Shown here piece after piece: positions 6,119-45,229 of a stretch of DNA of 64,000 nt (positions are counted from its first letter, which is position 1; every line of letters starts with the position of its first letter). This DNA comes from Phallusia mammillata. Taxonomy: Eukaryota. The translations under genes and the position numbers were made by a program. The DNA is taken from contig OZ281494.1 in NCBI GenBank assembly GCA_965637545.1, forward strand, positions 6,572,001 to 6,636,000. The letters are read 5' to 3'. The notes beneath the pieces are model-generated. The model was not told the origin of the DNA and ran no database searches. It was given only the letters and a program-made list of their open reading frames with translations.

Positions 6119-7384
6119 ATGTCTTCTCGTTATGTACACGTGTTTCTGGCAGTTGGACTGGCCAGTAAGTCGCGTTTATTTTAAGATGCTTTTAGTAAGG
6201 CTAATCTTACTGGATATGCACTTCTTAAATATTGACAAATATTTTCTGTTTTTACAGCTTCGTTGGGTTTGACAGCAAGCTATTGCCTTCATCTGCCAAT
6301 TCCAAACACTTCAGGTTATTTGGCTCACAGTACAGCGGTGTGAGTGGAAGTTTAACGATTCTCTTCAAGCCAACAGTGGATGTCGTATGATAATTTTCAA
6401 AGTTTTGGAAACTGCGTTTTTCGATCTTAAATCTAAGTTTATATTTAGATTGCCCGACAAACCAGGTAAAGGTTACAGCGTTTTTTCAGTGATCGTTGTA
6501 TAATGCATTGAAACTATATCTGTATGTGTAAGATGTTGATGCCTCATGTTCAAGGAGTGGATGGTGTCGGATTTACGTCAAAGTCGGTTCAGATATGACT
6601 CAATGCAAACGCTTGATAAGTGAAACAAACTTGTGCAATGATGGCATCAAAACTTCATTGATGTGGCCACCTGTTATCACCACAAGATTTTACAAGAGTT
6701 CAGCGGTGATGTCATATCAGTTTGTAGACTGTGACTCCAGTTCAATGTCAGGTACTGCTGTGTGTTTGGAACACAATATAGCTTAAAATTAGTCTGGTTA
6801 AAATTACAGGCATTTCTTCTACAGAAACCCCGACAGACCAAACTTCGACCCAATCGTCAGCACGATGTGATAGGCCTAATAATTTTGAAGGTAATCCAAC
6901 ACAACAACGCAGTAAATAAGTCATTGCTTCATGTAAAATGTCTCTTTTATTTGCAATCGAGAGTAGTTTAAGGTTGGATTCGGCAATGTACCGGCCGCAA
7001 ATTAAAATGAACTTTACAAAACCAGCACTAACTTGTTTTGTTGTTCTTTAGAGCCTTCCACGTGTTCATGCTCATCAATTCTACTGGGGCTGGTCGTGGT
7101 TATTTCCATTTTACTTTCAATTGCTGGGACAGGATTGCTGTTCATGGTTTTCAAATCTAGGTGAAACCGAAGAAAAAAAGATGTATTTTGCGGTTATGAG
7201 ATATTTCCTTTATTTCAGACGATTACAAAAGCCACAGAGAAGTTTCAATGAAGTCTACAGCATCGCCGATACGTTGCCAGCTATTTCTAATGGAGTCAGA
7301 ACAGGCGAAATCAAAGTTATTTACGTACCCGCCGATCCATCAACTGATAACAAAGTTGTTTATAATGATTTGTACAAGTTGTGA
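6119..7384 (+). pseudogene. X3: WPP-family receptor with C-terminal ITIM, frameshifted in exon 2
   Basis: Exon 1 MSSRYVHVFLAVGLA|gtaag. Exon 2 has only 7 nt (vs 30 in X8) between HS and CEW, which shifts the frame. The WPP exon, stalk exon, TM exon (ILLGLVVVISILLSIAGTGLLFMVF) and tail ending KVVYNDLYKL* are otherwise open. Confidence 0.85.
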
Positions 7385-7968
7385 ACTTTCGAATTTTGTC
7401 TATTGTGGTAATTTTCGTTTCGGACATGGAGAAAATTGTGGTAAATTTCGTGAATAGTTTTGTTGTTTAGGTCTTTGGTCAAATCGTTTCAATATGGTGT
7501 AGCCTTGACTTTTCCCGCTCGGACAAACAAAAAGATTTTCATGATCATTATAGCTTGGTTTGTGTTAATTTGTTTTGGCATCAAGTTGACCTTAATACAA
7601 ACCCACACGTGGAATTTCTTTTTGTGTTACTTACTTTAGAGTGAGACAAGCACTAGGCAAAGTATTTAATCAACTCACCTAAAATATCATATTGTTAAAG
7701 ACATCATAGGTCAAACCACTTCCAAATCGTCTATTGAAAGACCAATAGGTCATTTGCACCTATATAGCAGGTTTTGCATACATTTATTACACAATGGTGA
7801 CCGTGAATATTTCGAGCATCGAATTTGCATGACTATTAGGATGAACTCCAAAAAAGTCAACCCCTATGCAAAAATGGTTAATTTTAACTGACTGGCAAAT
7901 AGTGATGAACGTTTTAAGTGCAGAGAGATTTCCTTTGTGGTCTGTTTAGCTATATCCCGACAAAATTA

Positions 7969-8625
7969 ATGTTGCTACTGTTTCTATTTCCTCCACTAAT
8001 TTCAGGTTTGTAGAGTTAAAGGTTTGTTTTTCAAGACGTAAGCTTAGAAAATAAAAAGTCCATGCGTAATGCCGTTTGTAAAAGTATAGCATGCTATACT
8101 TATTATGCACAATAAGTCTGCAATTGCAAAAAGTACAATAAAATTTGAAGTTTGTGATAATGTCATGTGTAAATGATTTGTATAAGCATAAGACTCTGCT
8201 GATACCATACTCAAATAAACATACATTTGGTCTGTGTGTGTAGCAATAATTTCTGCAGACAATTTATCAATCACAGTATTTGGTTCTAATGGCCTATGGG
8301 ATCGTAAACTTATCCAAGGACCATTTTAAGCAATAAAACATGAACCCAAATCTTTATTATTCAGCAACTTGCTGTTTGTTCTTGTATAAATCCTATGTTC
8401 ACATTGCAGTGTTCTGTATCAGCTATGCGGAAGGAACAAACTGCACGATTGTTGAAGATACCTTTAACGGAACAACAAGGTATATCTACATCGGCGCTGA
8501 CAGCTTGGAAACTTGCGAATGGATTTTTAATGGCACATACCGCACAGACGTTGTCTTTGCATTGACGCTTTTCGAACATGAAGCACTGAACGGACAGCAA
8601 GGAGAAGTGTTTACTTTGCCAAGTG
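7969..8625 (+). pseudogene. X4: divergent family member truncated after the first domain exon
   Basis: Exon 1 MLLLFLFPPLIS|gt; exon 2 VFCISYAEGTNC...CEW...FTLPS|gtgag. The WPP exon present in paralog X9 (20409-20722) is missing because about 780 bp are absent near 9030. Confidence 0.75.
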
Positions 8626-9743
8626 GTGAGTTTGGCTGTTTAAAATTTGAATTGTGGTTTGTATTGAAAGCGTCAAATCAAACAAGACGTTTTCAAGTAG
8701 GCACGCTGTTGTCAATGATAACGGAACTTAACTTGTATTTCAGCAAAATATTGTTGCAGTTAAATAGTTTTGAAATATGTTTGTAAAAAATGATTTTTTG
8801 TCACATCAACTCGTCATCAATACAAAACGTAATATGCTGCTTTAGGCGCGTTACAGTAAATTATTATCTGACAGACGAGCTGAGTGTAATCTATAATTAC
8901 ATTTTTGTGGTGTGGTGTGTTTCATTGCATGTGTTTTACATCGTTTTTAGAAGTTTTCAAAGGACGGTAAAGTATCAATACTAAAATTACATTTGTCAGA
9001 AGAACTTTACAAAACGGCGGTAACAGTTAAATTACAAGAACTGCAAATGTACACTGTAGTTGTCTTTATTTGATCCGTTGCCAAAAAATATGTCAAGTAC
9101 TTTCCTGTCAATACAAGTAATTGTCATGGTAACAGTTAAACTCTCACGACATTCAATTTTATAATACCCGTTTCAGGAAAAAAATCAAACATCACGAGAC
9201 AAATTGTACTGTGTGTTTTAAATTGTGTTTAACGTCTGCACTAAACGTTTACTCGCATGCTTTCCTGCGTAGTACTGTACAATAAACTATTTGCATTTGT
9301 GGTCCATACTTTGGTACAGAAAAGAGAAACAAAAACAAATATAGTAGTTGGCTTAGCATTATTAGATTAAAATAGTTGGCTTAGCATTATTAGATTAAAG
9401 ATGAACTTGACATTTACAACATAAACAATGCACGTCTATTTACACGTAAACGTGACGTCAGGACGTCAGGAACCTTCTGCGCTGTTATGTGTGTGAGGAA
9501 CTTGCTGTAACAAATTACGGGAAGTGATACTGAACCATGAAACAGATTTTCAATAATCGGGCCTGCAAGCGTCAAGTCTATTATGAGTTTTCCGAACTAT
9601 CGTTATGTTGTAATAAACAACGAAAACCACGTGCAATAGTAAGGGTAAGGGGAGAGTATGAACATATATGTTCAGCCATGCGCAAGTTATTGTCACATGT
9701 TGTGCTTACGCAAACCGTTTCCGCAAAAACATCCCAAGTTAAA

Positions 9744-12283
9744 CCAACACACATGCATGTATACAATACAAATGTATACAATAAAGGAACATTTGAAACA
9801 TTTAGTAAATAGTTGTAAATATCAATAAGGAATCTCATCATATGGTTATGACGACGTTTTTGCAGCAAAGAAATGGTGAGCAGTAGGCAGAATATCACCA
9901 GAACAATAGTCGCAGTTACAATAGCGATCATTTCAGTCAGTGAAAAAGCTGGAAAAAAAGGTAAGTTATAATAATGGTAAATTAAATTTTTGCTTGGCAC
10001 ACCAAAACACTGTAGGAAAACATAAATCCAACTTCTAAACTCAGTTATTGATATGTTTAGATCTTTCGAATCGTATGTTGCAAATCTATGGGAAATAGTT
10101 TTCATCCAAAAAATAACATTTGTATACTAGTATCAAGAATATATAATTGATCAATGTAAACATGTAGCATAAAATAATGGGTTGATTTTCAATATCTACC
10201 TTTTAGCAATCCTTTAGATGTTGTTTCTATCACAGTTCGGTTAATTATACCAACCGGTGAAGTCATTGCAAAATTGGATGACTGTGAAGATGAAGGGTAG
10301 GTGATAGAGCAGGGGTGGGCAACATACGGCCCGCGACGGGATTTTGAGCGGCCCGCGGACAGTTTTCGGTCTTACATGATAATGTGGCCCGCGGCCACAG
10401 TCTGCCGCAACCCCCATTACTTGCTTACTACGTCAAATTACAGTTGTAACGCTCCCCAATAGCAAGTTTTCCCGCCGTTGTTACCATTGCACCATACGTC
10501 CATTGTTACGACATAACTACCAACCTTGTGTGTGTCCTACTTTAACGGTTTTCTTTGTTTTCACACGTATAGCCTAGTTCAGTGGTTCCCAACCATTTTA
10601 TGTCGCGACCCAAATACTTCTCAAAATTTGGTTTTGTGGATTATTGCGAACCATAAACATATATTCTTACTATTTCTTACTATTACGAATAATATTCGTT
10701 TATTTTTAACCAACTTAGAGCTGGCTCAAAGCATTATCAGCCAGACAACGCTTAACAGTGATCTCACACAAACATTATAACGTCACAATCAGAATTAACC
10801 ACTACCACGCCAAATTGTCATGAAATGATTATTGGGCAACAATTTATAGCCTTGGGGAAATAATAAAAAAAAATAAAAAAAAAATATAGCAAAACGACCA
10901 TTCTGTAAGTCAAAATGTTTGAACATCACTGCCCTTGGCCTGGGAAATAGTCTATGCGGCCTACACGAGTGTCGATAAATCGTTTGGTAGCTTTTATAAA
11001 CAAAAAGGTTCCCCACCCCTGCTTTAGGTGGTCAAAAATCCGTTTTAAATCACGGGATAAATACGCGATGTATGTATCGATTCAGGAATCCGGCCCGCCA
11101 AGTACTTCATTTTCCCATATCAGGCCCGCCGACTGGAGAAGTTGCCCGCCCCTGTGATAGAGGAATCGATTTGTAAAATTGAAGAACTTGTGGCTATTGT
11201 CGTCGATTGTGTTTTCACTTTTGCTGTTGTTGTGGTTGTTGCTGTTGTTGTTGATGTTGTTGTATCTTTCGACTTGTTTGTACGTAAAATGAGTGGAGTC
11301 TTCGTCGTCGTTGCTTTTGTTGCTATTGTCTCTTTCGGTTTGTTTGTGTTAAAAATCAATGATGTTGTGGTCGTTTCGGTTGTTGCAATTTTTGTCAACT
11401 TCTTTTCCGCATGCACTGCAATTGCAGTTATTAAAGATAAATAACGATAAACAAATTAGTTGGTTTCAGGTAACTTCAATAATATCGGCACGCAATGCTT
11501 TCGTTGAAGACCAAATTTAATCTAGTAAATTTCACCCTGATAATATGAATAGTTTGCAAAGCGATTCAAAAATGTTAAATGTATTTTATGTGGTTACCTT
11601 TAAATCGAGTGGCGTTGTTCTCCAATTTTGTGGAACAGTCAAAAATTTGGTATGACATCACAATAAAAGAGTGATAAAACACAGTTGTTAAAGTTGGTGG
11701 CCAAGTAGACAATGTTTTCATATTTTTCCCGCATAAATTATTTTTAGTGAGAACATCTATGCATAGCTCGTTTTTGGAACCAGATTTTGAGTAGGCGCGG
11801 CACCAACGACTGTTAGACGCCGAGAACTTTTTAGCTATTAGACTTAGAGCAACAAAACAGTTATTTTTGAGTATTGTGAAACAAAACAATCCTTGCTTAC
11901 ATTGCTCTTCCGGCAACCAAAACTTAAACTCAGATTTCAAACTGAAAACGACCGTTTCAAGAACTTTGAAAACCATCAAGCGGTTTGATCTGTTGTTGTG
12001 TTGAGTGTCATTAAGCTGCCAGACACACTTGCTCACTGCATGTCTGCCATACCCGGTGCTGTGAACCAAAATGCCTGAAGAATCGGAATTAGGAAGAGAA
12101 ATGCAAACGCTTGCTACCAATGAAAACAAGCCTGAAAAAATCAATCGCTGGGATGCATTCAGACTATTGTTTTGTCAAAGTACTATTGTTTATTAAAGTA
12201 CTTATTTTACTATTGTCCATAGAGTAGTAATTAGATTACTTACCGGCACATCCTGTTACAAAAAGAAGTTTCTTTGCCGACAT
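9744..12283 (-). pseudogene. X5: recent paralog of X2, disrupted by a hAT MITE in the Thr-rich exon and cut off after the TM exon by the duplication junction
   Basis: ATG 12283 MSAKKLLFVTGCA|; domain ORF 11575-12144; MITE at 10310-11154 gives SSITGAGNFSSRRA*; the cytoplasmic exons seen in X2 are absent. Confidence 0.85.
10310..11154. mobile_element. hAT (Charlie-like) non-autonomous element / MITE, 845 bp
   Basis: TIRs CAGGGGTGGGCAAC / GTTGCCCGCCCCTG (13/14); perfect 8-bp TSD TGATAGAG at 10302-10309 and 11155-11162; single TGATAGAG at the empty site in X2 (about 3696). A second hAT-type end, CAGTGGTTCCCAAC, is nested at 10580. Confidence 0.95.
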
Positions 12284-12942: not shown

Positions 12943-13066
12943 TACTGCAGGCAGTGCACACTGTTTCGACCTATATGGTCTCATCAGTGCAGCTGGCGAC
13001 GAGAGATCGGCCTTATTGGCTAGTGCAGCCATCCAACGGCACTCCCGTTCGTTGGGAGTAATAGAG
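12943..13066 (-). mobile_element. Penelope-like / retrozyme-like terminal relic
   Basis: Hammerhead plus about 70 bp of adjacent sequence that recurs, partly inverted, at 23054-23203. Confidence 0.65.
12944..12993 (-). ncRNA. Minimal type I hammerhead ribozyme fold (Penelope-like element relic); cleavage triplet reads GCC
   Basis: Minus strand GCUGCA CUGAUGA GACC-AUAUA-GGUC GAAA CAGUG-UG-CACUG C C UGCAGU. Core CUGAUGA/GAAA and stems I, II and III all pair. Confidence 0.85.
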
Positions 13067-14131: not shown

Positions 14132-16578
14132 ATGCTGCAGTTTCCATTTGAATGTCTTTTTGTGACCCTAAAAATTGTAGGGCTTTGTCTAACGTCAATA
14201 ATAACCAGTGAGTAGAGGTTTTAAATACTTCAACATGAAACTTGTTTATGACGGCTAATTTGTGTTTTCGTAGCTTCGTTGGCTCTGAAACAGGGTTTCT
14301 GCCTACCTCTGCAAAGCTGCGACTCTTCAGGCTATTTGGTTCAAAGCACAGGTCGTAACTTTCCTGTCACTGGCAAATGTGTATATCAGTTTAATGAATC
14401 TCAACAAACAAGCAGAGAAAATGTTATGATGGTTTTCAAAGTGTTGGATGTTGGATTCTTTAATCAGAAATCTCAGTTTATTCTCCAGTTGCCTGATCAA
14501 CCAAGTAAAGTTACATTGTTTGGTTGTTACGGTGTAAGTTTTAACTGTGACTCTATTTTAGATGTAAAGTACTCATGTCCAAGAAGTGGTTGGTGCCAGA
14601 GCTATGTTAAACCTAATTCAAATGCGAATGAATGTAAACGATTGCTAGATGAAGCAAAATTGTGTGCTGATGACATTAGAGCTTCAGTTATGTGGCCGCC
14701 TGTTATCACCACTACATTTTATTTGAGTACATCAGTGATGTCATATCAATTTGTTGACTGCAATAACAACACAACGAGAATTACAAGCAAAGGTGAACGT
14801 TTTGTAAACATACGAGGCTTAACACAAAAACCGATGTATCAACCGTTTGTGACATAAGTGATTTAAATTAGCTTTCTTCTACAGATAAGTCATGGAACCC
14901 CACAACAAAACCTAGCATTTACAATGACAACCAACATACTGTTAAAGGTATTTTTGGTCGGATCCAAATATACTGACATTTCTTCTGACACTACCTGTAA
15001 CTTTATCCCACGTTTTGCCAATATTTTTTTGCCACCTACTCTGATATTATTTAATGAGGTAGTCACAAACATAAATATTTTGTTGATCGTTATTGTTTTA
15101 CACAGCAGGTATTACAAGTAACCCATCTACAACAACGACAACAGAAGATATTACAACATCGCGTAGTAAAACCACAGCTGATGCGGAATTCACTACAACG
15201 TCACCGAATAAAATTACATCACAGGTTAAAATGATAGAAGGTGGGTTAAGAAAAAAAATAACATTTATTTGTCTATTTTGACATAAATTAGATACTTCTT
15301 TGTCTCTTACGTGAAGTCGTGGCAAACTACCAATTCAAAAATTAGACTGTAGCATAGTTGAAGGTTTGTAAAATAATCATTCTCCCTTACAGATTTATTA
15401 TTCGATATTGTTTCTCTTTCCTCCCTTCACACGACTGACAACGTAATGTAATAATTTTGTTTCTACGTTGGTCTTGTTTGTTTTCTATGCTTTCCGGAAT
15501 GCTTCATTTGATGAAAAAAATCCCCCTGCAGATTCTTTATTAGTGAAGAACTCCCCTTACGTTAGTGCAATAACACAACGATAACGTTTGAGGCAAAAAT
15601 GATTTCGATTTTCGTGGTTTTGTATTATTGCAGACAGTCCACGGAACCCAACAAATAAAGCTGATCACATTCACAATGGCAAACTATATATTGTTAAAGG
15701 TATTTTTACTTGTGACATAAGAACTGGTGTGTTTCAAGATACCAATAACCTGATGAGGGCGTCTCGTATGGCTGTTTATAACAAAAGCGTTGGAACAGCT
15801 TATACATTATAGCCTAGGTGGCAACAAATATATGATTCATCTAAAATAATCCACAGCTTTTGTAATTGTAGAGACTACATGATTAGCATACGCCCTTAAT
15901 AAACCAAACAACAATGCATATGGTTTGATTCAATTTACATATTCTTTATCAAGTAGCAGATTTCAGTATTATATTTACTCAATGCTTTGATGATATTTCA
16001 GGCTTTTCCGTGACTGATATGATCGCCATAGCAACAGCGACAGTTGTGTTGGCGATTTTTTGTGTGCTTATCGTCGTCGCGTTGTGTCTTAAGCAGCGAA
16101 ATTACAAAAGGTAAAGCGTGTCAGTATTTCGATGCTTTTCTTTTTAAGTCACCGCTACTTTTATTGTCCAAAAATATTATTCCCAAAGCACTGTTTTTCC
16201 AATAATTTGTTGGAATGCATTGAAATACTATCTAGTAAATGTTTGTTGTTTAAAATTGTATACATGCACTTTGATCAAGCGTTCAATTCACACATAGAAA
16301 CATCAATTCAGACCAATACCAAGAACAAAATTATCAATCAAGAAGTTTGCGTGCTGCTTCTGAAATAGTGATTGAAGACCATTTCATTTCTCCGCCACCT
16401 ATGTCACACCACGGTAAACAAATTTGTAAAACCTGTTTGTCACGTTGAGTAATAAAACCTTTTTGTAGACTATGGCAGTTTGGACGTTGCAGCAGAACAA
16501 GACAACGATGATTATCTTGCCCCAATCCGACAACCAATTCCCGAATACATGGATTTTAATGAACCCAATCGGAATTAA
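14132..16578 (+). CDS. X7: apparently intact WPP-family receptor with multi-exon stalk and Tyr-motif tail
   Basis: MLQFPFECLFVTLKIVGLCLTSIIT|; domain exons 14274-14504 and 14562-about 14792; several phase-1 stalk exons; TM GFSVTDMIAIATATVVLAIFCVLIVVALCL; tail ending DYGSLDVAAEQDNDDYLAPIRQPIPEYMDFNEPNRN*. Confidence 0.85.
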
Positions 16579-17270
16579 AATAATCTGAGTCAACGTATTT
16601 TTTGTAATGTTTGTGATGCTATCCGGAAATTTTTTTTTATATTTGTGTACATTTTATGGTGTGATTGTTTACTTTGATTTTTTTTTCTTCTTCTTAGTTC
16701 CAAACCCCTTTTTCGATGTTGAAACATTTTGTTTTTATCATACTAAGTGTTAGCCTTTTGATTAACCAGCTTTTAAAAAAGCACTAATCTTTCTCGAATA
16801 TGCGTACCTGATTTAATCCTAATTCGTTCACAATATTCCAAAAATAAAACATCACTAAGACAAAATAATGTAGAGAATATTAAGAAAACAAGAAAGAATA
16901 TCCAGGATATGAGAATAGGTACTTGTGACATATTTGCATTGCGAGCGGAAAGCCGATTTTACATATTTTCAACGAAACGGCGTCCAGACTTACTATCACC
17001 ACCGCTATCAGATAATTAATTAAACGTTTCCAAATTACCGTCAGTGTACTTAGTTTGTAAATCTTATTAGGGTAATTTTATGCCATGACCTATGAATTTG
17101 AAGTTCAGCGAAAGAATGCTTTGACACTTACTTTGCGGTATAAAACTCAAGCGATAAATTTACTTTAAATAGTTTGTTGTAGCCGAAAATAATCACCGAT
17201 GTGCGCTCGTGACTCTACGGCATTGTTTGGGTTTAAGAGTCACATGGACAAACATTTTGCGTTTTTGCAG

Positions 17271-18353
17271 CTTTGTTGGGCTTGGCAGAAAGCTACTGCC
17301 TTACTATGCCAATTTCGGAAACTTAAGGTTATTTGCTACACAGTAGCACGTTTAAGAAACAAGAAGTACAAAATTGTGAGTGGAAGTTCAACAATTCTCT
17401 TCAACCTAGCAGTGGATGTCGTATGATGATTTTTACAAATCAAGTTCATGTTTAGATTGCCCGACAAGCCAGGTAAAGTTTGAAGCTGTTTTTCAGTGAT
17501 CATTGTATAATGCATTGAATCTATATCTGTATGTGTTAGATGTTGATGCTTCATGTTCAAAGAGTGGTTGGTGCCGGAATTACATCAAAAACGGTTTAAA
17601 TATGACTCAATGCAAACGCCTAATGAGTACAACAAACTTGTGCATTGATGGCATAAAAACTTCAGTTGTGTGGCCCCCTGTTATCACCACTGGATTCCAC
17701 AAGAGTTCAGCGGTGATGTCATATCACTTTTTAAACTGTGACTCCAGTTCGATGTCAGGTACTGCCGTGTTTTGAAAAACAATATTCCTTTAAGGGCTCT
17801 GTATAAAAATTACAGGTGTTTGTTTTATAGAAACACCAACAGACCAAGCAACGACCCAAACCTCAGCACGATGTAGCAGGCATATTGATTTTAAAGGTAT
17901 ATAAGTCAACACAATAACGCGGTAAATAAGTTATTGCAGCATGTAAATTTTTTTTATTTGCAATCGGCAAGTTGAATGAACATTACAAAACCGACACTAA
18001 CTTGTTTTGTTGTTCTTTAGAGCCTTCTGCGTGTTCATGCTCATCAATTCTACTGGGGCTGGTCGTGGTTCTTTTCATTTTACTTTTAATCGCTGGCACC
18101 GGATTGCTGTTCACGGTTTTCAAATCTAGGTAAAGCAATAGTAAAAAACGTGTATTGTGTGGTTTTGAGATATTTCCTTTATTTCAGGCAATTACAAAAG
18201 CCACAGAAAACTTCAAATGATGTCTACAGCATGGCCGATGCGTTGCCAACCATTTCTAAACGAGTCAGAACAGACAAAGTGAAAGTTATTTACGAATCAG
18301 CCGTTTCATCAACTGATAACAAAGTTGTTTATAATGATTTGTACAAGTTGTAA
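17271..18353 (+). pseudogene. X8: ITIM-type family member with premature TAA
   Basis: TAA at 17324-17326 where X3 has TCA; 30-nt in-frame deletion later in the same exon; WPP, TM and KVVYNDLYKL* exons are paralogous to X3; exon 1 not found. Confidence 0.85.
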
Positions 18354-19510: not shown

Positions 19511-20722
19511 CTGTGAGTAGCCATAGAGTATCGACACTGTGAGTAGCCATAATTTCTGCAGACAATTTTTTGATCACACTATTTGGTTCTGCATTTGATT
19601 TTGGTGGCCTGTGAGAGCGTAAACTTATCCAAGGACCATGTTAAGCAATAAAACCTGAACCTAAAGCTTTGTTATACATCAACTTGCTATTTGTTCATTG
19701 TATAAATCCCATATTCATATTGCAATGTTTTGTATCAGCTGTGCGGAAGGAACAAACCGCACGTCTGTTGAAGATGGCTTTAATGGTACAACAAGGTATA
19801 TCTACACCGGCGCTGACAGCTTGGAAACTTGCGAATGGATTTCTATGGCATACACCGTGCAGATGTGGTGTTCGCATTGACGGTTTACAAACACGAAGCA
19901 CTAAACGGAAAGCAAGGGGAAGTGTTCACTTTGCCAAGTGGTGAGTTTGGCTGTTTAAAATTTGAATTGAGGATTGTATTAAATGCGTCAATCGAAAATC
20001 AAAACAAACAAAATTTTTTTTTGAGGAGACACGCTGTTGTCAATGATGACGGAACTTAATGTATCTCAGCAAAATGATGTTGCAGTTAAATACTTTCAAA
20101 ATGTGTTTGTAAAAAATGATTTTTAGTCACGTCAGCTCTTCATCAACATCTAACTTATCAAAACGTAATATGCTGCTTTAGGCGCGTTACAGAAACCTGT
20201 GATAGGCGAGCTGAGTGTAATCTATAATAATTACATTTTTTCTGATTTTATAGGACTGTAAAGTATCAATACTAAATTACATTCGTCAGAAGATCTAGTT
20301 GAACTTTACAGAACAGCGGCAAAACTTTCATTGATGTTTTGTTCACTTTTAAGTAATCAGATGCATTAAACACAACGTTTCCGAGTTAATGATTTAAAAT
20401 ACCTTTAGGTTTACAGGTCAACTTTCCAAAAGGTGACAATTTTAAATCAGGACTTTGGTGCCAGCTTTATGCAAGCAACAACCACCCACCAATGAAGAAA
20501 TGTGCGAAACGCTTTTCACATATCTGCAACAAAGCGCTTAAAATAAGCAAGCCGTGGCCACCTCGCATGACAACGTCGGTCTACTTCCTAAAGCTGGAGT
20601 TAGCTTTTGAGTTCTTGGATTGTGACAAAGATTTGAGTTTGACCACAATCCAGCATATCATTCATGCCACTACACCAAAAACTGCATCTACTCAGCGGCT
20701 ACAACAAACTCCCAACCTGCAG
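19367..20722 (+). pseudogene. X9: paralog of X4 with dead acceptor and -1 frameshift but retaining the WPP exon
   Basis: Acceptor ttgcag of X4 reads ttgcaa; 1-nt deletion near 19840; open exon GLQVNFPKG...WCQLY...KPWPPRMTTSVYF...FEFLDC. Confidence 0.75.
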
Positions 20723-22046
20723 GTACAGTACATTTTGTTTCTGAGTTTCTTTGGGTGACGTAGAATGTATCTAATATGCAAAATAATGTATTAGCTGTAA
20801 TTTCTGTAATTAAAGTGCAACAAAATAACAACGGGAATAATGTTTCATTCTGCAAGTTATCTAATTCCAGTCATATAACATTTTCACGTCACAGGTGTTC
20901 TGTGAATGACAACGGCTGTGTTAATCTTTTATTACCGGTAATCTTGTTTTAATTTTTTGTAGATTTGTTGCTGCTTGCTACTTTGAAAACATCCATCATA
21001 TTGTCAACAACAACTGTGGTTACAGCCGCACAAGTCCTCTAATGTTATACCAATAGACGTGTGAGTCAAATGAAAAACAACTTGTTAAAACGCGGGATAA
21101 ATTGATACAAAAACTGCAAATGTACACTGTAGTTGTCTTTATTTGATCCGTTGCCAAAAAATATGTCAAGTACTTTCCTGCCAATACAAGTAATTTTCAT
21201 GGTAACAGTTAAACTCTCACGACATTCAATTTTATAATACCCGTTTCAGGAAAAAAATCAAACATCACGAGACAAGTTGTACTGTGTGTTTTAAATTGTG
21301 TTTAACGTCTGCACCAAACGTTTACTCGCATGCTTTCCTGCGTAGTACTGTACAATAAACTATTTGCATTTGTGGTCCATACTTTGGTACAGAAAAGAGA
21401 AACAAAAACAAATATAGTAGTTGGCTTAGCATTATTAGATTAAAATAGTTGGCTTAGCATTATTAGATTAAAGATGAACTTGACATTTACAACATAAACA
21501 ATGCACGTCTATTTACACGTAAACGTGACGTCAGGAACCTTTTGCGCTGTTATGTGTGTGAGGAACTTGCTGTAACAAATTACGGGAAGTGATACTGAAC
21601 CATGAAACAGATTTTCAATAATCGGGCCTGCAAGCGTCAAGTCTATTATGAGTTTTCCGAACTATCGTTATGTTGTAATAAACAACGAAAACCACGTGCA
21701 ATAGTAAGGGTAAGGGGAGAGTATGAACATATATGTTCAGCCATGCGCAAGTTATTGTCACATGTTGTGCTTACGCAAACCGTTTCCGCAAAAACATCCC
21801 AAGTTAAAACAACGGATGTTGGCTCGAATAATAGCTGTGTCGTTGTCGCGGTGTGGATGTTATTTTGAATATGATTGCGGTTCAACGTTGACATGATGTT
21901 CGGACTTCAAGCAGTGCTATCGTCGCTTGATTTCCAAATTATTATTATTATTGTTATATCCTGCTCGTTGTACATTGTTATTACATTGAGAGTAAGGGTT
22001 AATAAAGTTTATGATAAACAAATCATGCGTCACTTCCACGTCACTG

Positions 22047-23203: not shown

Positions 23204-24850
23204 TCTGCCGCTCGAGCTTTTGTTTTTCATACAACTCTAAGATTCTCTAAAAGTGATTTATTGCAATCGTTATTTGTTTTATTCCACTTCCTTTAAACAT
23301 TTATTTACGTCGTAGGCACAAGATTGAACCAAACTTCAGCTTTGACGTCTGCATTCTGTGGAAGTTACATCAAGAATCTCCATTGTAACGTCACAATTCC
23401 TGGTTGTCAGAGTCCAAACACAAGCATATCGTGGCCATCGATATTGAACACAGAGTTTTGTAACTTTGAGATTCAGCTCACTTATGCAATCATCACATTT
23501 CCTGGCGGTTGTCCCAGCAAACAGGCTTACGCGAGTAAAACAGGTATTGACTTCAGTTCATTAATCCCCATCAGACTCAATATTCTATGTTTGAGCTTTT
23601 ATTTTTGAACTGCAAAAGGGTTACCTAATGTTGTTGTTCAATTTTTTGTGATATCTATAAATCACTAAATTCTTTTAACAGAATTAACACATTAACAGAT
23701 TCTACTACTGCGTTTCAAACGACATCAGGATCAAATACAACTACAGAAGTGATTACAATTGCAACTAAAGTACAAAGAACAACTGCAATTGCAACAACAG
23801 CAGAAACAGCAACAATTACAACAACAGGAATAGGAACACAATCGTCGTTGAAACCAAACTCGACTTCTTCACCACTGTCAGCCGACAAAAGTGTGACAAC
23901 ATTATTCAGCAAGGAAACCACCAAGGATAAGGGTACAACCATAGGCGCCGAGTAGGCACCTTGGTTTTCTATCGCACGGTGGCGGCCACCGTGGATATGT
24001 TGGGTTGTTCGTAGCGGTATTGTACGAAATATCGTCAAATGAAGAAAATTAGTAACATTTTGTTTTTAAACAAGCGTACCGGCGAAATAACCACAAAACG
24101 TGCCTTAAAACAGCAACATACTTAGGTTAGTGCCTTGTTTATGACGCCAAACACACAATTGTCTGCCAGTGAATGTCTGGTCATTGTGTACAACGCAAAT
24201 GTGGTGTAATAAATGGTTATCTCAGGATATAAAACAGCAACAACTTGACGAAACATTCTTTGGACGTTGCTAAGCCAATGACAAACGTTACAGCAACGTG
24301 TGGCAATTTCCAACTAAATATTAATTGAAACAGACCTTTTTTCTAAATTATGACGAATTCTGCATTCTGTGGGAAATTTATTGAGGCTTTCAGTTCTTGT
24401 GATTGCACTCATTAGTGACGTCACACAAAGTGACGTCATATTTTACATTCGCCACCTTGATTTTTTGTAAAACTCGGCGCCTATGGGTACAACGTCCACT
24501 TTTAATTCAGTAGGTAACTGTGCAGGCAAAGAAATTCATTGTCAAGCTGTAATAAATGTTTAATATAGGCATGACGTGGTAAAATCATTTATGTTTGGGC
24601 TAACGTGTTTTAATTGTTGTTATTTTTCGCTTCAAGCAGAATCTTCCACATCTGCTCCAGAGCAAACAACAATTAAAACTGTCAAAACGACGGTAAAGCA
24701 TTGGCCCAGAGACGGCGGGGACACAGCAAATAGTCTTAGTAGCATAATATGTGATAATATGTAAGCAAAATGCGAATATGTTTTAAATTTCAAACTTGCT
24801 ATACACTCATTGGCTTGTATTTGTTAAATGAGCTTTTTAAGTTTTAATTG

Positions 24851-27117: not shown

Positions 27118-29643
27118 ATGTGCAACAGTTTGCTGATCTCGATAATACTATGTATAGTTTTGGGTAAGTTCTTTGAATTTTGCCCAGGAAATATCAATAT
27201 ATATATATATGTTACTTAACATAAAGCAAAGTAGCCTACTAGAAGCTTATGAATTGTCATTTCAGTATAGTTTATACATGTCTAATGCTACAATTTATGG
27301 TTCGCAAACTTACCTCTGGATAAATGTGTTTCTTGTATTTCTTAAGCTGATTCCAGTGATGAATTAGAAAAGCGACACGATTACATTACTTGGGAAAATC
27401 AAGATGAAACGATCTGGACATTTAAACACAACTTGTCGGAAAATATGCTTTCATTGCTAATTATCAGAGCTAATAACGTCAAAATTTTGCTTCCTGGTGG
27501 TAATAGTTAGTATTTTGTGGTAGTAAATAAATACAATGTTTCTAAAAAACAAAAAAAAAACGCAAAATTTTAACGTGGGCTAATTTACGATCAAGTAGTA
27601 ATAAATCTGTTTTAGTTTAATTTATGTTGAAAATTACATAACAGGTGTTTGGCACTTGACTCAATAAGGTTTAAACATTCGGTAACAACTGACTTGAATC
27701 CGTTTCGATTATATCAGAAAAAAAAGTAGGAATTTCAAAGACTACAAAAAACATTTTATTCTTCAATATAACATTGTTACAAAAAAATAGGACGCAAAGA
27801 TGAAAAGTTAACGTTTTTGTGTTTAATAAGTTCATTTAATGAAGGTATCTATTGCACCTAACTACAATTAAGTTATAAAACTCGGGTTCGGGTCTGGTTA
27901 CGGATTTTAAAATTGGGCCTTCTGACAACTTTCGGTTTGAGCTCATGTTAAAACAGAAAACAAATGAACAGGAAATCGCTGAGTAAACAATCGTGATCAT
28001 GTTAAGAGCTTACACGGGCTTTACTGCGGGTTATGTAAACGTTGTTCTTGTTTTACCAAGCTGTGACAAAACTAATAAATCATGTTTCTTTAAGGCAGGA
28101 GCTACACGTCTAATATTGATGGAACAGATTACTGGTGTGGAGTTTTTGTTTATCCCAACAATTCTGGTGCAGGATCTTGTCGCGCAAATGTCACTTATTC
28201 CGATGTTTGCGAAAATCCTTCGACGGCTAGTTTGCCATGGCCTCCACAACTTGAAGTTCAAAAAATTAAGCTATATAGGCCATCTACCATACTATATAGC
28301 TATGCTTGGTTGAATTGCAAAGAAAAGGCTAATCCACCTAAAGCTTCAACAGCAGCTGCCGTTACGACGCCTGTAGAAGGTATGGAGTCAAGCAATTCAC
28401 GTAACTTATATTTTTAAGACCTCACATCGTTTTTGCTGCAGAACATAAAACTACACAATCAGATACAACTGTTCCTAGCTTTTCCACGCAAACATCCAGA
28501 ACATCAAAACCCCAATCGCAAGGTGGTTTTACAAACACAGGTTGGTCACAAACTACGTTATCTGTAGGAATAAATACCTGATTTAAAAATGAGCCTACAG
28601 TTATGTTTGTTATCCAATGCCTTGTTTATCTGCCTTTACCCCTTTGCGGTACTTGTTTTGTTGGTATAGGCTATTGTGCGATCGTGCGATAAAAATGCAA
28701 AGTATCGTTTAAATCAGATCAGATTTGATTGAATAAATATAGTTGAATTGGGCGGCTCTGGAGTTACTCAAAACACTGATCGTGGTCAGTTACAATAATT
28801 GACATAAATATTAAATGTGTTTGTAGACTTTGTTACGCCGAGTACCAGCACAGAAGACACAGTGATAAGTGATGAAAAGCTAACTAAAAATGGGATTACA
28901 ACAATAATTCTGGCAGTTGCTTTGGTGATAAGTCTTGCAGCACTGGGAATGACCTCAATCTATCTGTACAGGTGAATCATATCTGTAAATATCAATCGAT
29001 TAAAACACAGATCACAATCTCCAAACGTAAGCAAACATAAAAAAGTATTAAAATACATTTGGCAAACAGCAGCGCAAATCAATCAAATGTTTTATTTGCT
29101 CACATATTAACATAAGGATTATCACATCAGACATTTTTTTCTCAGCACTGCTGCTTAATTCAAGTGTTTTTTTTTCCTTTTCAATCAAGTTTAAACCCAG
29201 CGTGGATAGTTTGGATGTGTCTGTATGGTTTAAGCCCCTTTTAAGTTTTGGTGCAAAGTCCTTTCTCTGTTTACTGTCAAAACATTTTCTTCTTTCTGAC
29301 TTATGACTGTATAAGATATGTATTTGCCACATAAGTATGTCAAACGGGAGGAGTAAAATGTGAACAAAACATTTTTTGCCCTGTGCTATTAAATACTTAA
29401 ACAACCTAATTTCTCGTCCGTACAATCTCCACAAACTTATCGTCTTAAATTTAACAGTTGGTATTTTCATTCAGATTTTGTAAAGAGGAGAGATCCAATC
29501 TAAGTAGTAAAGATCACAAGCAAGTGATCACTAATGATTGTAAACAACACCAAGAAAAAGAGAGCGCTTGTTCAGCAGGAGAAATGGTCAACAACGTATT
29601 GTACGATTCATACCAGGGTTCAACTGATATCTCTAATTACTAA
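27118..29643 (+). CDS. X11: apparently intact divergent WPP-family receptor
   Basis: MCNSLLISIILCIVL|gtaag; exon ending KILLPG|; exon YWCGVF..SC..VC..LPWPPQL..YSYAWLNC; stalk exons; TM ITTIILAVALVISLAALGMTSIYLY; tail ending EMVNNVLYDSYQGSTDISNY*. Confidence 0.8.
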
Positions 29644-35185: not shown

Positions 35186-35258
35186 GTTAGAGTCAAAACC
35201 TGCTTATAGTGAGGGTGACAAGAGTCAAATGAAGTTGTTTAAAGAAATATTTGCCTTG

Positions 35259-39560: not shown

Positions 39561-40437
39561 CTGTCAGCTTGTGGTTGACTTGTGCGACGGACCAGCAAGT
39601 TTTATTTGAATTTCCGTGCATTCATAATAATTTGCATTCCATAAAGTCACAGAAGGTTCGTTTTAACCTACTGCCACTTATTGTTTTGGGCTTAATCCAA
39701 GTTCTTCTAATAATCTTTCCTTGCAGTAATTAAACACACACATTTATTTCAGTGCGTTTGAACTCATTCCGATTGCACTCTAAACATGCAGGCATAGGTC
39801 GCGTATCCAGAATCGAACAAGTTTTGGGATAAACCAACATTCAGTTATGTGTAGACACCAAAACTTAAAAACGAATCATGGCAACCATGACACAAATCAA
39901 CTTCGCTAAAACGATCGTGCCACTGATTAAGTCTGCTGCAAGTTGATTAGGGAAAGGCATTTTTGTTTGTGCTTAGAGGCACTTGATAGTGTCTTTTTGG
40001 TAATTTTCTTTGTCTCTTTCATGTAGTTTTTTGTTTTGGTTATTTGGAATGCTGCTAAAGTTGATAAAGACGCCATATCTTTGTGTATGGCTTTGTTTGT
40101 TTACTCATGTTTTGTTTTAAACTATTGTTGTTTAGAAGGAATTAATTATCCAGTTTTTTGTCAAATTGGTAATGTAAATGCCTTGCCCAGAAAATGTATC
40201 AAAGTTCAACTGTAGTACAGACTTTTCTCTGTTGTGTCCATACTGGTCAATTTTAAAGGTGCATTTTCTGTGCCTCATTTACATTTGATTGTTGGTCGCA
40301 CGGTTCATCACTGGTTAATTTGCATCCTGGTTGTTGACGCCGCTTCAATAGTTGCTACTTCCGCTGAATAATGCTTTGCTGCAGAGCTTGGTTTTGCGAA
40401 ACTATAACAGTTTGCAGAAGATAGAAAAGTCGACACA

Positions 40438-42306
40438 ATGGAAGTAAAGTTATGTTTGGTGCTGATTTTAACAGGTAAGTGATACTTTTCAGCAAAAATA
40501 AATGACAAGAGACTTTTCAAATGCTATCTTTATCCTAGAATACGGTGATTAAAACGGCTTGCTGTTTTCAAAGGCATAAGTAGCGTTATTTTACGCTACT
40601 GTAATACTTCTAAGTTAATGTTGACAAAAAAATTATAAAAACTATATACGTTGAACGAAAAACACTTAAATCAGTGTACTATGCACAAATAGAAAATGAT
40701 TCCAGGTGCAAACGAGTTTTATGTATAACATTTTGTATTTTTAGGCTTTACTTTTCCGCTCGCTGTGCTTTCAACCAGCAAGTGCGGTCAGTATTTTAAA
40801 GGCAACTGGCTTGGTATTCTTCATATGGTTGGTACAAACGAATCAAGTTGTAAGTTGACCCTTGTGCCATCCGTTGGTAACCTCACTGGGATAGCAATGC
40901 AGATTATGCAGCTGAAGACGACCAACCCAACATCTCAAAGTACATTTGTAATGCCAGATAAGAACAAGCTACTCAGTCAGCCTGTAGATTTTTACAACGC
41001 TCCCAAGCAGCAGTGCATGATATTCACACAACCCGGGGCAACGCTTTGTTCTAATGCGGACTTTAACGAAACATGTAATACGCCGATTATCACAACGGCA
41101 AGTCAGTGGACACCAGTGGTCGAAACCCAACTCTTTGACGCCACGATTATTGTGTCATACACGTTCCTAAAATGCCAGAGAATTCCGGTTACTCCAACAA
41201 CGACAACCGCTACTAAAGAGGCAGGTATGATATGGAGTCATTCAAAATATCGAAACAAATAACCGCATTCTTAATCAAAATACCTTTCAAAAGCACGATA
41301 TGTAGTGCATTTTGCCTCTGTTTGCTGCAAGTAATGTGAGGCTATGTTAATAATACCTAAAGTAAACAGGTGATAAGGTTGAACATAAATCTTGATACCA
41401 ATACATAATGTTTAGAAAATGTCTTCTGTTTTTTTTTAGACAAAGTGTGGCCATCTCACACAAAGTTTCGTTTAAATCAGAATCTTTACGCAATTTATCA
41501 TGGTTAATGTTTGGTGTTTTTCATTTTTAGCTTCTGGAATTGGTCTTTCCCTTGCAAACGTCATCCTAATTGCAACATCCATGTTCTTGATTTTGCAGGC
41601 ATTGATCTGTGTAGCATTTGTTAGGTTAGATTTTAATTCTTTATTTAGAGTAACTGCTCTGATTTTAATTTAGTTAATGCATTTCCAGTTATTGCTTCCA
41701 AATCAAGAGAAAAAATAGTCGACCATCAATTACAGGTAATAATAGCTTTTGTGTGTAAAATTCATGTCGCTTTACCAAAAAGTTTCCTATGTTTTTAATA
41801 TTTTTTTGGGCAGGGTCGAAAACTTTTCATAAAACGAGCCAAATTTCCTACATTAACTGTACCGAACAACCAGGTAAGTTATTTTCTATAAAATACGTAC
41901 AGTTTGAATCGTTTAGGTCAAGTGAGAAATATAAACTTGTTAGGTATGTACATATATGTGGTCAAATGTTAAGGAAACGTAACTTAATTGTTAATTTTAA
42001 CTAACATAATTGAAATCTTTGATAGGTTTTGATGGAAGCCTTCCTAAATCGGATGTGGATGTGGATGGATATTTAAACTCAATAAGTAACTTATTTTACG
42101 TCATTTTATAAATTCCACGAGTAAATGTCCATCTGCTTTCAGGGACCGGAACTGGCACGCAAAAAAACGGAAGTTACGTCAGTGGACCCCTACGTCAACA
42201 ACAGAATCAGTCATGTTTATTTGAACTAAATGTTGCATCCAAACAATACCACATGTGCCAAATGAGCCTTGGTTTAAGTCATTTTCGGGGGCAAAAGCCG
42301 CTATAA
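40438..42306 (+). CDS. X12: divergent family member with the whole ectodomain in one exon; exact C-terminus uncertain
   Basis: MEVKLCLVLILT|gtaag; single exon with C..GIL..C..MPD..C..C..C..QWTPVV..VSYTFLKC; TM LANVILIATSMFLILQALICVAFV; tail exons ISYINC and DGYLNSI. Confidence 0.75.
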
Positions 42307-42386
42307 ACTATAGAATCAGTGTTCTTTTATTTTTTTAATAGCTGCATATTAAAACGTATTATTTTGTCCTGACCTATAGTGTACAA

Positions 42387-42705
42387 CAGGGGTGGGCAAC
42401 CTTTGTCGCTGTGGGGCCAAATACAATTGCGATGATTAGATCGCGGGCCGTACCTCTGTATAACACAAGGTGATTTTACTTCGTTGCATACCAAAAAAGC
42501 CTTACTACAAGCAAAATTCGCATTTAATTTTAGCAGCATATTGTCAGGGCGCAGAAAAAAAGCACCTGGCGCACTAGTCTGCTTAAACAAATATAATAAC
42601 TGGACTCGTTTGCCAGTACATTTGAAATCCAAGTGTCTCTGCGGGCCGCACAACCTTTATTCAAGGGCCGCATGTGGCCCGCGGGCCGTAGGATGCCCAC
42701 CCCTG
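42387..42705. mobile_element. hAT MITE, 319 bp, same terminal family as 10310-11154
   Basis: CAGGGGTGGGCAAC ... GATGCCCACCCCTG; TSD gtgtacaa / gtgtacag (7/8). Confidence 0.9.
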
Positions 42706-43213
42706 GTGTACAGGTTACATAAACGAAACAAGATCAAAAATGAAAATAAAACTTAATGTGATGGGCAGATCGCTGTAATAAACAACCCAAAAGAATGTTT
42801 ATATTTAGCACGGTTGTACTCGGGGCATGTCCCATATTTACAAGCTTTGTTCAAGTAATCATATGTGAACAAAAACATATCTTTAAAATTGTGTCTGTTT
42901 TATGCAAATGTTGTATTTTATTCGAATATTTATCTCCTAAATCAAATTATCGCGAAATTCATGTTCAAGTCCATAGATAAGAAGTTTGAAAATCCCAGTT
43001 TTAAAAAATTCTCGCCTGGTTTTACCACTTTCTAAATCGTGATACGTAAACCTGATGTCATACAACTTACACATAGCTTGATTAGTTTTCTGCGATTTAA
43101 GTACTTCCGTATGTTGACACTTAATTACTCAAGACCATATTTACATATAATTGCTTTCACCGCACAAGTTTCGCTGTATTAGTTTATCAGTGTTTGAAAA
43201 ATAAAAGGAGAAC

Positions 43214-45229
43214 ATGAAGACTTTGTTACTGCTAAGCATAGGTAAGATTTGCTTGATAAAAATATTTACAGATTATATTCAGTCAATCATAGAGTAAAAG
43301 CTCATGTGTTGAAAATACCTAGTTTTTGGTTGTTAAGGAAAAGTCGTTTATCTTTTTAGCAAAAAAGGGGGAAAGCGACAACTTAAAAAGTAATATAGCA
43401 GAATACAATGTACACACGTCGATTACAAACGTTACGGTCTGCAATGCACCCCTTTTGCTCGACAGTTGGTTGTTTGTGGATATCATTTTTGTTTTTGTAA
43501 AAACAGCTTGCTTGTTATTAAGTGTCTTATGATGTCTAGACCGTTCGATTTTCTTACTGTTCGTTGCCACACTTGTATATTCACAGTCTTTGCTACGACG
43601 AAGTTGATCCGGTGCACAATTGCACAGCTTGCTTGAGGCAGGAATTTTTTGGAACTTTGTATCATGGAAGCAATCAAACCACACCGGAAGACTGTAGCAC
43701 AACCTTTGTTGCAGTAGCACAACGCACGGACCTTGTGGTTGTGTTCAATATTCTGCAAGCCAACTGTCCGTCCCGACATGAATCTACGATTGGAGTTACA
43801 CTTTGTCAAACGGTAGAAGCAATTCTTTGTTGTTATTATAAGGTTATTTAACTTTAAACAGAAAGCGGCTGACTAATAACTTGATCGCATTGAAACCGTT
43901 AGCTGCAGGTTTTTCAAGTGTTGTTGGTGCCAACATTAAAAGGCAGTTCATCTCACAGTAATTACTCTACAATGTTTTTGTAGATTAAAACTTATTTGTA
44001 CGTTATGTTTTGTATGTTACATCTTTTGAGCACATAATTCACTATCCAAATAGGGTCAGAATTGTATGAGTAATATCTATAGTGCTATCGGTTTTATCTT
44101 TTCTAACGTATATTTAATACTGTTGTTTTCTTGTCAAGACATGATGTTTGATTTCGCTGATGGCACCGTCTCAAATATGTTACAACCTTGATGTTTAGCA
44201 TTTGTAAGTCCCGCCTCAACCACTCATTCTGGATGCAAAGAATATGTTGAGCTGCAAAACTTTTGTGGAGGGACAGCTATGACTCATATGAGTGTGAAAT
44301 GGCCGCCAGTGTTTTCGAGTCATGCTGCGAAGTATGCTATACTTATTCAGTTTAAGGTTATAAAATGCCCTACACAGTTTTCGATTCCGAAAATTCCCAC
44401 ACGAGTACCAGGTAACGCCAAAAAAAAAACGCTACAGCAAAAGTTTTTGTTTAGTTTGAGCAAAGTTGTAATGAAACATCACGTGTAAACATGGCTTTTC
44501 TTTTGATTATTAGTGCTTACCACCACCACTACGGCCCTATCCAGTGCTGCAATCACCAACTCAACCGTGTCTACATATGCAATAACAACTCCGAAACTCC
44601 TTGGTATTTTGCTGAGAGCAATCTTCTTCATTTTCTTAACAGAGATTATTATCTTTTTACTCTGCAACAGGTAAGTATAAACTATAAACCCAGTCAATAA
44701 AGTAAGCGTAACATTTCTTGTAAACCCATGCTGAAAATGAGCAATATACGTCCAGATAATAATCTTTCGTACACTTGCCATTGCCAAACGGTGATGGGAT
44801 TCAAACCCACAACAATTAAATCATTAATTCATTTTTTTTGTTTCAGCCCCAATAATAAAATAATAGCAGTGTACATGTGTTTTTAAGCCTGGAAATAAAG
44901 GCATTTAGTAGACACTAACGTTAAGTAACGCTCCGCATAACAGTCCAGACCATGTGCACATTTGTACAGGTTGTGTGTACTATTGTCGCCCGCGCATACT
45001 TGGACGTTTATGGTTTCAGGAAGACTGCACAAATTATAAATATTTTTTACTATCATAAACGGATTGAAAAAGCTACCAAAACGTTGGAGGAGGATTTATC
45101 TTCAGGTAAGGGGTTTCATCCTTTGTTTCAGTAATATTTACTATTCTGATAACATTTCATGCAAAGGTAATTCAGTCAACGATAACGAACAACCAGTTCC
45201 AGTATTGGACAATTATATTTCCCCGATAC
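43214..45229 (+). pseudogene. X13: family member with TGA at the conserved Trp of the WC motif; TM carries Arg and Glu
   Basis: MKTLLLLSI|gtaag; QP*CLAFV..GC..FC..KWPPVF with TGA at 44189-44191; TM exon 44514-44670; tail VLDNYISPI. The exon 1 to exon 2 phase is also unresolved. Confidence 0.7.

Follow-up and report, generated by a model that had tools for sequence, protein, structure and literature searches.

Known receptor families and the Phallusia locus

Vertebrates (KIR, LILR), Botryllus (FF/FcoR), and Hydractinia (Alr) rely for immune and self/non-self recognition on tandemly arranged, fast-evolving single-pass receptors with tyrosine-bearing tails. In the vertebrate pairs the ectodomains are more than 80-90% identical, the inhibitory member carries at least one validated ITIM (immunoreceptor tyrosine-based inhibitory motif), and the activating member has a short tail and a transmembrane (TM) Lys or Arg that recruits DAP12 or FcRγ. 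Another type of tail is that of CED-1/Draper/MEGF10 and the LDLR-type receptors, where NPxY and a second tyrosine motif make up a docking form for PTB adaptors. The nearest published system to the locus described here is the fester co-receptor (FcoR) family of Botryllus schlosseri. The FcoR genes lie in tandem, haplotype-variable clusters and encode single-pass proteins with an Ig-Sushi-Ig-Ig ectodomain and short multi-tyrosine tails, in which ITIM, hemITAM (a half ITAM, the immunoreceptor tyrosine-based motif for activation), 'core' YxxI/L/V, and [A/D]VYxxV motifs are found; the genes swap ectodomain and TM/tail parts, and alternative splicing switches the tail motifs (PMC12582321). The present locus is a cluster of related genes, here called the X genes, in a 64,000-nucleotide stretch of the ascidian Phallusia mammillata (GenBank assembly GCA_965637545.1, contig OZ281494.1, positions 6,572,001 to 6,636,000, forward strand). 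The whole stretch is referred to as the window and coordinates are positions in it. It has 36% GC, tttcag-type acceptors, and no N.

The X genes are best read, with somewhat better than even confidence, as a tandem birth-and-death cluster encoding small type I membrane glycoproteins, CUB-like, mucin-stalked receptors with shuffled TM/tail modules, the tails of which carry two conserved tyrosine docking motifs. The first putative docking motif is a C-terminal Φ-x-N-x-L-Y of PTB/NPxY-like form (Φ, hydrophobic residue), found in X11, in X3 and X8 (as VYNDLY), and in relatives from Clavelina and Ciona. The second candidate is [DE/N]xY[LI]x[PS]I, of pYxxP character, in X7, X2, X12, X13, Ciona, and a Phallusia cDNA. 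Held jointly with this reading, and with the same degree of confidence, is the conclusion that the apparent ITIM of X3 and X8 is a by-product of the first motif and not a separate inhibitory module. In such a receptor the CUB-like head would bind a ligand or cluster, the tyrosines of the disordered tail would then be phosphorylated, and adaptor proteins would dock on the two motifs.

Like FcoR, the X genes form a tunicate tandem multigene family with tyrosine-motif tails and module exchange. They differ in having a single CUB-like domain and a mucin stalk, in the NxLY and YLxPI motifs, in the absence of a canonical hemITAM, and in having no known partner gene or allorecognition link. KIR, LILR, CD300, and Siglec-5/14 resemble them in clustering in tandem, in evolving by birth and death, in their many pseudogenes, and in joining related ectodomains to differing TM/tail modules, but ectodomain identity is far lower here (57% and 43% for the C-halves of X3 and X8 against that of X7) and none of the features of the vertebrate pairs is found in an intact gene. 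The short disordered tail, which joins an N-x-x-Y with a hydrophobic -5 position to a further motif of the YxxL/P type, is reminiscent of the CED-1/Draper/MEGF10 and LDLR-type tails, whose ectodomains, in contrast, consist of EGF/LDLa repeats and which have Pro at -2 where Val, Glu, or Asp is found here. The X-gene family would add a case of tandem recognition receptors in the closest invertebrate relatives of vertebrates, one that extends across ascidians, has a CUB-like head in place of an Ig or lectin head, and uses its own conserved motif vocabulary (NxLY, YLxPI). Since Ciona and Phallusia permit transgenesis and knock-outs, the question is directly testable. The members of the cluster are listed below (asterisks mark stop codons; ORF, open reading frame).

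696-1252, minus strand: X1, ectodomain remnant, split across frames and broken
2383-4672, minus strand: X2 gene; ectodomain ORF 4097-4672, stalk rich in Thr 3586-3996, TM exon 3343-3229, tail exon up to the stop, beginning at 2473 (AG compatible in phase) or at 2483 (strong AG), tail ..IGVVPQAEIVEYLAPNQQPAADCSEFYYNA*
6236-7384, plus strand: X3, pseudogene with the 'ITIM' tail type; ectodomain 6236-6783, stalk 6782-6916, TM exon 7052-7160, tail exon 7219-7384, C-terminus STDNKVVYNDLYKL*
8340-8783, plus strand: X4, ORF for the N-half of the ectodomain
9842-12144, minus strand: X5 gene; ectodomain ORF 11578-12144, TM exon ~9948-9842
14252-16578, plus strand: X7 gene, the best preserved; ectodomain 14252-14854, stalk ~15087-15231, TM exon 16002-16110, tail from 16479 (in phase) ..KQRNYKS LDVAAEQDNDDYLAPIRQPIPEYMDFNEPNRN* or from 16469 (strong AG, out of phase) ..RLWQFGRCSRTRQR*
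17237-18353, plus strand: X8, pseudogene and duplicate of X3; ectodomain 17237-17772, TM exon 18021-18129, tail exon 18188-18353, C-terminus STDNKVVYNDLYKL*
19698-20109 (frameshifted) and 20393-20650 (C-half), plus strand: X9, duplicate of X4
23297-23500, plus strand: further ectodomain copy sharing the family signature
28094-29643, plus strand: X11 gene; exon for the C-half of the ectodomain 28094-28414, stalk ~28405-28578, TM exon 28827-28971, tail exon 29475-29643, C-terminus EMVNNVLYDSYQGSTDISNY*, which is the family NxLY motif
40729-42111, plus strand: X12 gene; intact single-ORF ectodomain 40729-41259, TM exon 41531-41624, tail exon from 42039 (in phase, S LPKSDVDVDGYLNSI..) or 42026 (strong AG, VRF*)
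44150-45229, plus strand: X13, likely pseudogene; match to the ectodomain C-half 44192-44485, end of the stalk and TM exon 44670, motif exon from 45132 reading ..VLDNYISPI, then a GTAAGT donor

The C-terminal NxLY motif

The preliminary description of this locus saw in it an independently evolved paired-receptor system, with an ITIM on the tails of X3 and X8 and activating-type tails on other members of the same ectodomain family. The peptide strings that it named are all present in plus-strand frames at the positions listed in this text; those of the C-terminal motif are given here.

7352-7384, plus strand: KVVYNDLYKL* of X3
18321-18353, plus strand: KVVYNDLYKL* of X8
29590-29613, plus strand: NNVLYDSY of X11

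VVYNDL of X3 and X8 fits the ITIM pattern (S/I/V/L)xYxx(I/V/L). When the X3 tail is shuffled, the same pattern turns up in 26% of cases, and the match is thus not significant. The C-termini of X3, X8, X11, three Clavelina sequences, and two Ciona sequences were aligned using MAFFT, and this places VVYNDLYKL* in register with a family-wide [IV]xN[VE]LY. All eight sequences, from three genera, agree in the Asn, the Leu, and the last Tyr of this motif. The Clavelina sequences read ..LIDNVLYQPIYQ*, ..LVNNVLYQPIGQ*, and ..MISNVLYRQF.., those of Ciona ..LVDNVLYHQY.. and ..RTNELYFV.., and X11 ..MVNNVLYDSY... The tyrosine of the supposed ITIM falls in the variable column before the Asn, where the other six sequences have D, N, S, or T, and is accordingly not conserved among the relatives in this alignment; the invariant tyrosine is the last one (LYKL*). 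The ITIM match is then explained by a lineage-specific tyrosine lying inside the family-wide Φ-x-N-x-L-Y motif. Such a match, being a side effect of another conserved motif, cautions against calling ITIMs by regular expression only. The tails of X3 and X8 differ with a ratio of nonsynonymous to synonymous substitution rates (dN/dS) of 1.28 overall, while their last 14 codons are identical, which points to constraint on this C-terminal block during part of the time since the duplication.

Counted from the last tyrosine, VYNDLY, VNNVLY (twice), IDNVLY, ISNVLY, and VDNVLY have Asn in position -3 and a hydrophobic residue in position -5, an NPxY-like combination; RTNELY of Ciona P0027 has no hydrophobic residue at -5. 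Endocytic adaptors as well as PTB domains (Shc, Dok, Dab, Numb, CED-6) recognise the form Φ-x-N-x-x-Y. VVYNDL was also considered as a YxN site for Grb2, and this was ruled out by the position of the Asn, which is at +1 instead of +2. The Ciona locus L002 contains tandem paralogs upstream of LOC100187535 (at 53-133, 1875-1955, 3665-3745, and 6217-6285 of that locus), and these end in AVYEFAN..AEMVDNELYQSH or ..AEMVDNIIYN. Judged from these ends, the Ciona cluster also mixes tail types, all with a C-terminal motif of the NxLY type.

The Y[LI]x[PS]I motif

A recurring motif of the form DxY[LI]x[PS]I was noticed already in the preliminary description, and it is real: besides the copies in the window it is present in Ciona and in a Phallusia paralog derived from cDNA. 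The relevant strings of the window and of the relatives are the following.

16471-16482, plus strand: YGSL of X7
16507-16527, plus strand: DDYLAPI of X7
16543-16557, plus strand: EYMDF of X7
42064-42084, plus strand: DGYLNSI of X12
45208-45228, plus strand: DNYISPI of X13
X2: VEYLAPN
Ciona: ENVYLTPI (ENVYLAPI in another assembly)
Phallusia, cDNA-derived P0015: ENVYLQPI

In a six-frame translation of the window D.Y[LI].[PS]I occurs three times where about 0.15 occurrences are expected, a number to be read with the reservation that the pattern was defined after the fact. The form pYxxP is preferred by SH2 domains of the Crk/Nck/Abl type. DNYISPI sits in a likely pseudogene, since a TGA (44189-91) replaces a conserved Trp codon of X13. 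In X12 a possible GTAAC donor is found directly after ..YLNSI. Exons of the NxLY type were searched for downstream of X12 and X13 and none was found.

Distribution of the motifs between genes

The proposed split between inhibitory and activating members did not hold up, as the tail classes are shared across genes and both ITAM/hemITAM tails and intact genes with a charged TM helix are absent. X11, which had been placed in an activating class distinct from X3 and X8, carries the same NxLY motif as these two, and the motif classes therefore do not fall on separate genes. The partition also fails because single tails of the relatives combine several tyrosine motifs: Ciona P0027 has ENVYLTPI, NNVYETV, and TNELY in one tail, and Phallusia P0015 has YLxPI together with several other tyrosine motifs. 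No tail examined matches the ITAM or hemITAM expressions. The TM helices of X2, X3, X7, X8, X11, and X12 have no charged residue in the core. The only charged TM of the cluster is that of the likely pseudogene X13 (44598-44670, LLGILLRAIFFIFLTEIIIFLLC), with Arg and Glu in the core; this may reflect decay rather than a residue for adaptor pairing.

Gene anatomy and splice phases

The X genes share an order of parts: a signal-peptide exon, an ectodomain encoded by two exons, one or more Thr/Ser-rich, mucin-like stalk exons, a TM exon, and one short tail exon. The ectodomain intron is in phase 1 and lies right after LPxG (6466-6532 in X3, 67 nt; 17473-17539 in X8), and X11 and Clavelina P0009 have a phase-1 intron at the same place. 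The equivalent in X7, 14505-14561 (57 nt, GTAAAG...TTTTAG), is in frame and stop-free. Both the spliced and the retained form of X7 would be readable, and the AlphaFold model of its ectodomain has a predicted local distance difference test score (pLDDT) below 50 in exactly that stretch.

The donor of the TM exon is always in phase 2, the tail exon supplying one base. It reads AG|gt in X3, X8, X7, X11, X12, X13, and Ciona LOC100187535, and CT|gt in Clavelina P0009. In X3, X8, and X11 the strong acceptor joins the tail exon in frame, and the tails of these three are thereby confirmed. In X7, X12, and X2 the phase of the strong acceptor does not match, and its use would give ..RLWQFGRCSRTRQR*, VRF*, and ..RLREHRCRSTS*, respectively; only a second AG 10-13 nt downstream (16479, 42039, and 2473) restores the frame of DDYLAPI, DGYLNSI, and EYLAPN. 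This downstream AG lies within a conserved Ser codon (AGT/AGC). The tandem acceptor pairs (16469/16479 in X7, 42026/42039 in X12, 2483/2473 in X2) are an arrangement common to three divergent paralogs. Because only the second AG is compatible in phase, the YGSL tyrosine of X7 is probably intronic.

A small intermediate exon of 3n+2 nt would bring the strong acceptors of X7, X2, and X12 in frame, but no homologous candidate for it was found, and the Clavelina and Ciona relatives likewise have no intermediate exon between TM and tail. Upstream of the second AG, X7 and X2 have conserved D-Y codons that differ synonymously; these were rejected as a proof of coding, the flanking X2/X7 intron being alignable too. 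It is a rather distant prospect that X7, X12, and X2 carry an on/off switch of their own, in which the tandem acceptors toggle between a motif-free tail of 3-20 residues and a docking tail. If so, the choice of splice site inside a single gene would produce the 'pairing' of signalling and non-signalling forms. The tails of Botryllus FcoR3/4, which splicing switches, would offer a parallel, with the difference that a frame-toggling tandem acceptor would be used here.

The ectodomain and its relatives

All X copies share one ectodomain, as the preliminary description had proposed, and the common signature of its C-half is WC..Y..C..C..WPP..TT.FY.S..VMSY.F.DC (tblastn and alignment). A profile of seven window ectodomains, run against 1.84 billion representatives, matched 17 relatives, and every match with a source name is an 'uncharacterized' ascidian protein. 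Among them are P0001, P0009, and P0016 from Clavelina lepadiformis, P0017, P0010/P0027, and P0012 from Ciona intestinalis, and the cDNA-derived P0015 from Phallusia mammillata. In Clavelina (locus L001) and Ciona (locus L002) the relatives also stand in tandem rows. A word-based protein search using the X7 ectodomain exon gave no match, and one using the alignment of relatives returned only two of its own input proteins. No Pfam domain was found in the window ORFs or in six full-length relatives, and no CUB match at E<=1. A literature search on ascidian or Ciona CUB and ITIM receptors gave nothing relevant, and no paper on the family was found. Judged by these sequence searches the X genes are an ascidian-restricted, undescribed family.

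The Cys-containing ectodomain of about 150 residues is likely to have a CUB-like β-sandwich fold. A model of the Clavelina P0001 ectodomain, built on the alignment of 17 sequences, has a pLDDT of 81, and in an exhaustive structural search (VIA) CUB domains fill all of the first 21 places (Z 6.2-7.9), among them TSG-6, Gpr126, cubilin, neuropilin, C1s, MASP, Kremen, and spermadhesin. The superpositions cover 94-103 residues at ~3 Å with 10-18% identity. The best Foldseek match of the same model is a GOLD domain (E 2.6e-3), and against the PDB Foldseek gave no significant match for either the Clavelina P0001 or the X7 model. The AlphaFold model of the X7 ectodomain has a pLDDT of 66 and best matches the CUB region of C3/TEP1 (Z 6.8). 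The predicted fold thus superposes on the CUB domains of single-pass and related CUB proteins (neuropilin a1/a2, Kremen, CDCP1, the TSG-6 CUB), from which the family differs by lacking a Pfam CUB match and by an extra Cys-containing loop/helix region.

State of the copies and evolution of the cluster

That X3 and X8, the two copies with the ITIM match, are both pseudogenes was borne out, and their lesions are independent. In X3 the only real lesion is a 23-nt deletion near 6330; a second apparent frameshift proved to be the 67-nt phase-1 intron described above, which is also present in Clavelina P0009, and was ruled out as a lesion. X8 carries a stop codon (TAA, 17324-26), and its ectodomain exon has lost 28 nt. 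The remnant X1 is spread over different frames, and X9 is frameshifted. With X1, X4, X9, and X13 broken or truncated and X5 without a tail, brokenness is the norm in this cluster and not peculiar to the 'ITIM' copies. X7 and X12 look intact, and X2 and X11 are plausible genes; the TM donor of X2 is weak.

The pairs X3+X4 and X8+X9 constitute a segmental duplication of ~11 kb with 86-91% identity. X5 is 84% identical to X2 in the ectodomain and 99% in the TM exon, while its tail exon is missing, the homology to X2 stopping near 9743 at the start of a repeated element. X4 and X5 both lose their 3' parts at this element (9033-9748), which is 98-99% identical to 21106-21813. The pair of ~700-bp elements is much younger than the surrounding duplication of 86-91% identity and probably goes back to a transposon that inserted recently or to a tract of conversion.

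Compared with the ectodomain C-half of X7, that of X3 is 57% identical and that of X8 43%, and the TM and tail exons of both are unrelated to those of X7, in keeping with the earlier claim of one ectodomain family with differing tails. The tail regions of X2 and X7 can be aligned, intron included, and the ectodomains of these two are only ~37% identical. TM+tail modules have, from these comparisons, apparently been exchanged between ectodomain lineages.

DNA contigs from two further samples show the tail of X3 unchanged (7133-7367, zero differences). The intact ITIM allele that other haplotypes might have held did not turn up, as these contigs show no indel at the site of the X3 deletion, although contigs cannot exclude rare alleles. 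One DNA contig of the sequencing run labelled X4 (depth 5) joins ~6675 to 7057 of the window (side region 6653-7057). The junction leaves out the last part of the X3 ectodomain exon, the whole stalk exon, and the intron as far as the TM acceptor, and may be a deletion allele or an artefact of the assembly graph.

Alternative explanations

The most serious rival to the docking-receptor reading is that the tyrosine motifs are mainly sorting or endocytosis signals (NPxY-like and YxxΦ, e.g., YQPI, YNDL) on cargo or scavenger receptors like cubilin/amnionless or those of the LDLR type. We consider this unlikely, yet it deserves more weight than the models of a dead cluster or of paired receptors. 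The motif [IV]xN[VE]LY agrees with FxNPxY in its Asn (-3) and in the hydrophobic residue at -5, but has no Pro at -2, and while several versions have a +3 residue of the YxxΦ type (YQPI, YRQF, YNDL), YLxP has no hydrophobic residue at +3. A CUB-like head is found also in cubilin. The TM/tail region of Ciona P0027 gives a weak Pfam match to Amnionless (E 0.077), which is below the cutoff and not significant. The Clavelina tails have 7-8 tyrosines in acidic or Asn-rich contexts (YESI, YESV, YELP, YEME) typical of kinase substrates, which does not fit well with a mere sorting signal. A true paired-receptor system, where an ITIM of the X3/X8 type recruits SHP-type phosphatases and other tails activate, is improbable. 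Its ITIM tyrosine stands at a variable column of a motif shared by the 'activating' X11, and although VVYNDL fits (I/V/L/S)xYxx(L/V), so do the 26% of shuffles mentioned above. There is a single such motif per tail, six residues from the C-terminus, and both copies that have it are dead. The invariance of the C-terminal block between X3 and X8 and the presence of two unrelated TM/tail modules on one ectodomain lineage agree with pairing; against it are the lack of ITAM/hemITAM tails and of charged TM helices in intact genes, and the Ciona and Phallusia relatives that mix YLxPI with other tyrosine motifs in one tail. Tunicates do have ITIM/ITAM machinery and a published ITIM/hemITAM family, Botryllus FcoR (PMC12582321).

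It is just as doubtful that the cluster is largely a graveyard, with tails that are relics and motif matches that have no present function. X1, X3, X4, X8, X9, and X13 are broken or truncated, X5 is without a tail exon, the dN/dS of the X3/X8 tail is ~1.3, the TM donor of X2 is weak, and no RNA was seen. X7 and X12, on the other hand, have intact ectodomain ORFs, canonical splice sites of the TM exon, and a phase-compatible tail acceptor, and the motifs are conserved in annotated Ciona and Clavelina genes and in a Phallusia cDNA. Several points also weigh against the favoured reading of a receptor cluster with two docking motifs. Most copies in the window are broken. The motif frame of X7, X12, and X2 requires the weaker second AG, while the stronger first AG leads to short motif-free tails. 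The PTB and SH2 assignments come from consensus knowledge only, and we know of no binding partner, kinase, or ligand for the family. A structural Z below 8 is no proof of a CUB relationship, so that the likeness is one of predicted fold and homology is not established. Finally, transcript evidence was found for none of the window genes, the RNA being probably not from the relevant adult tissue. Two RNA runs compared with 2300-8299 gave no contig on the exons of X2 or X3, and no RNA run containing X7 was found.

Other observations in the window

The only matches of the two RNA runs in 2300-8299 are to low-complexity or repeat sequence and are no evidence of X2 or X3 expression. One, 3762-3804, is the low-complexity stalk of Thr codons, which draws unrelated RNA contigs; the other, 5438-5479, is a very high-copy short repeat with a summed contig depth of ~26,000 in the sequencing run labelled X3. 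Rfam, at the gathering threshold, gave nothing in the window. The CUB-like cluster is neighboured by a minus-strand gene for a receptor tyrosine phosphatase (52700-60700), with catalytic exons of the HCSAGVGRTG type, a TM segment at ~57900-58000, and lectin-like exons upstream. Partial duplicates of this gene are found 6-10 kb away, at 46443-46958 and 48672-48888, with 83-90% identity.

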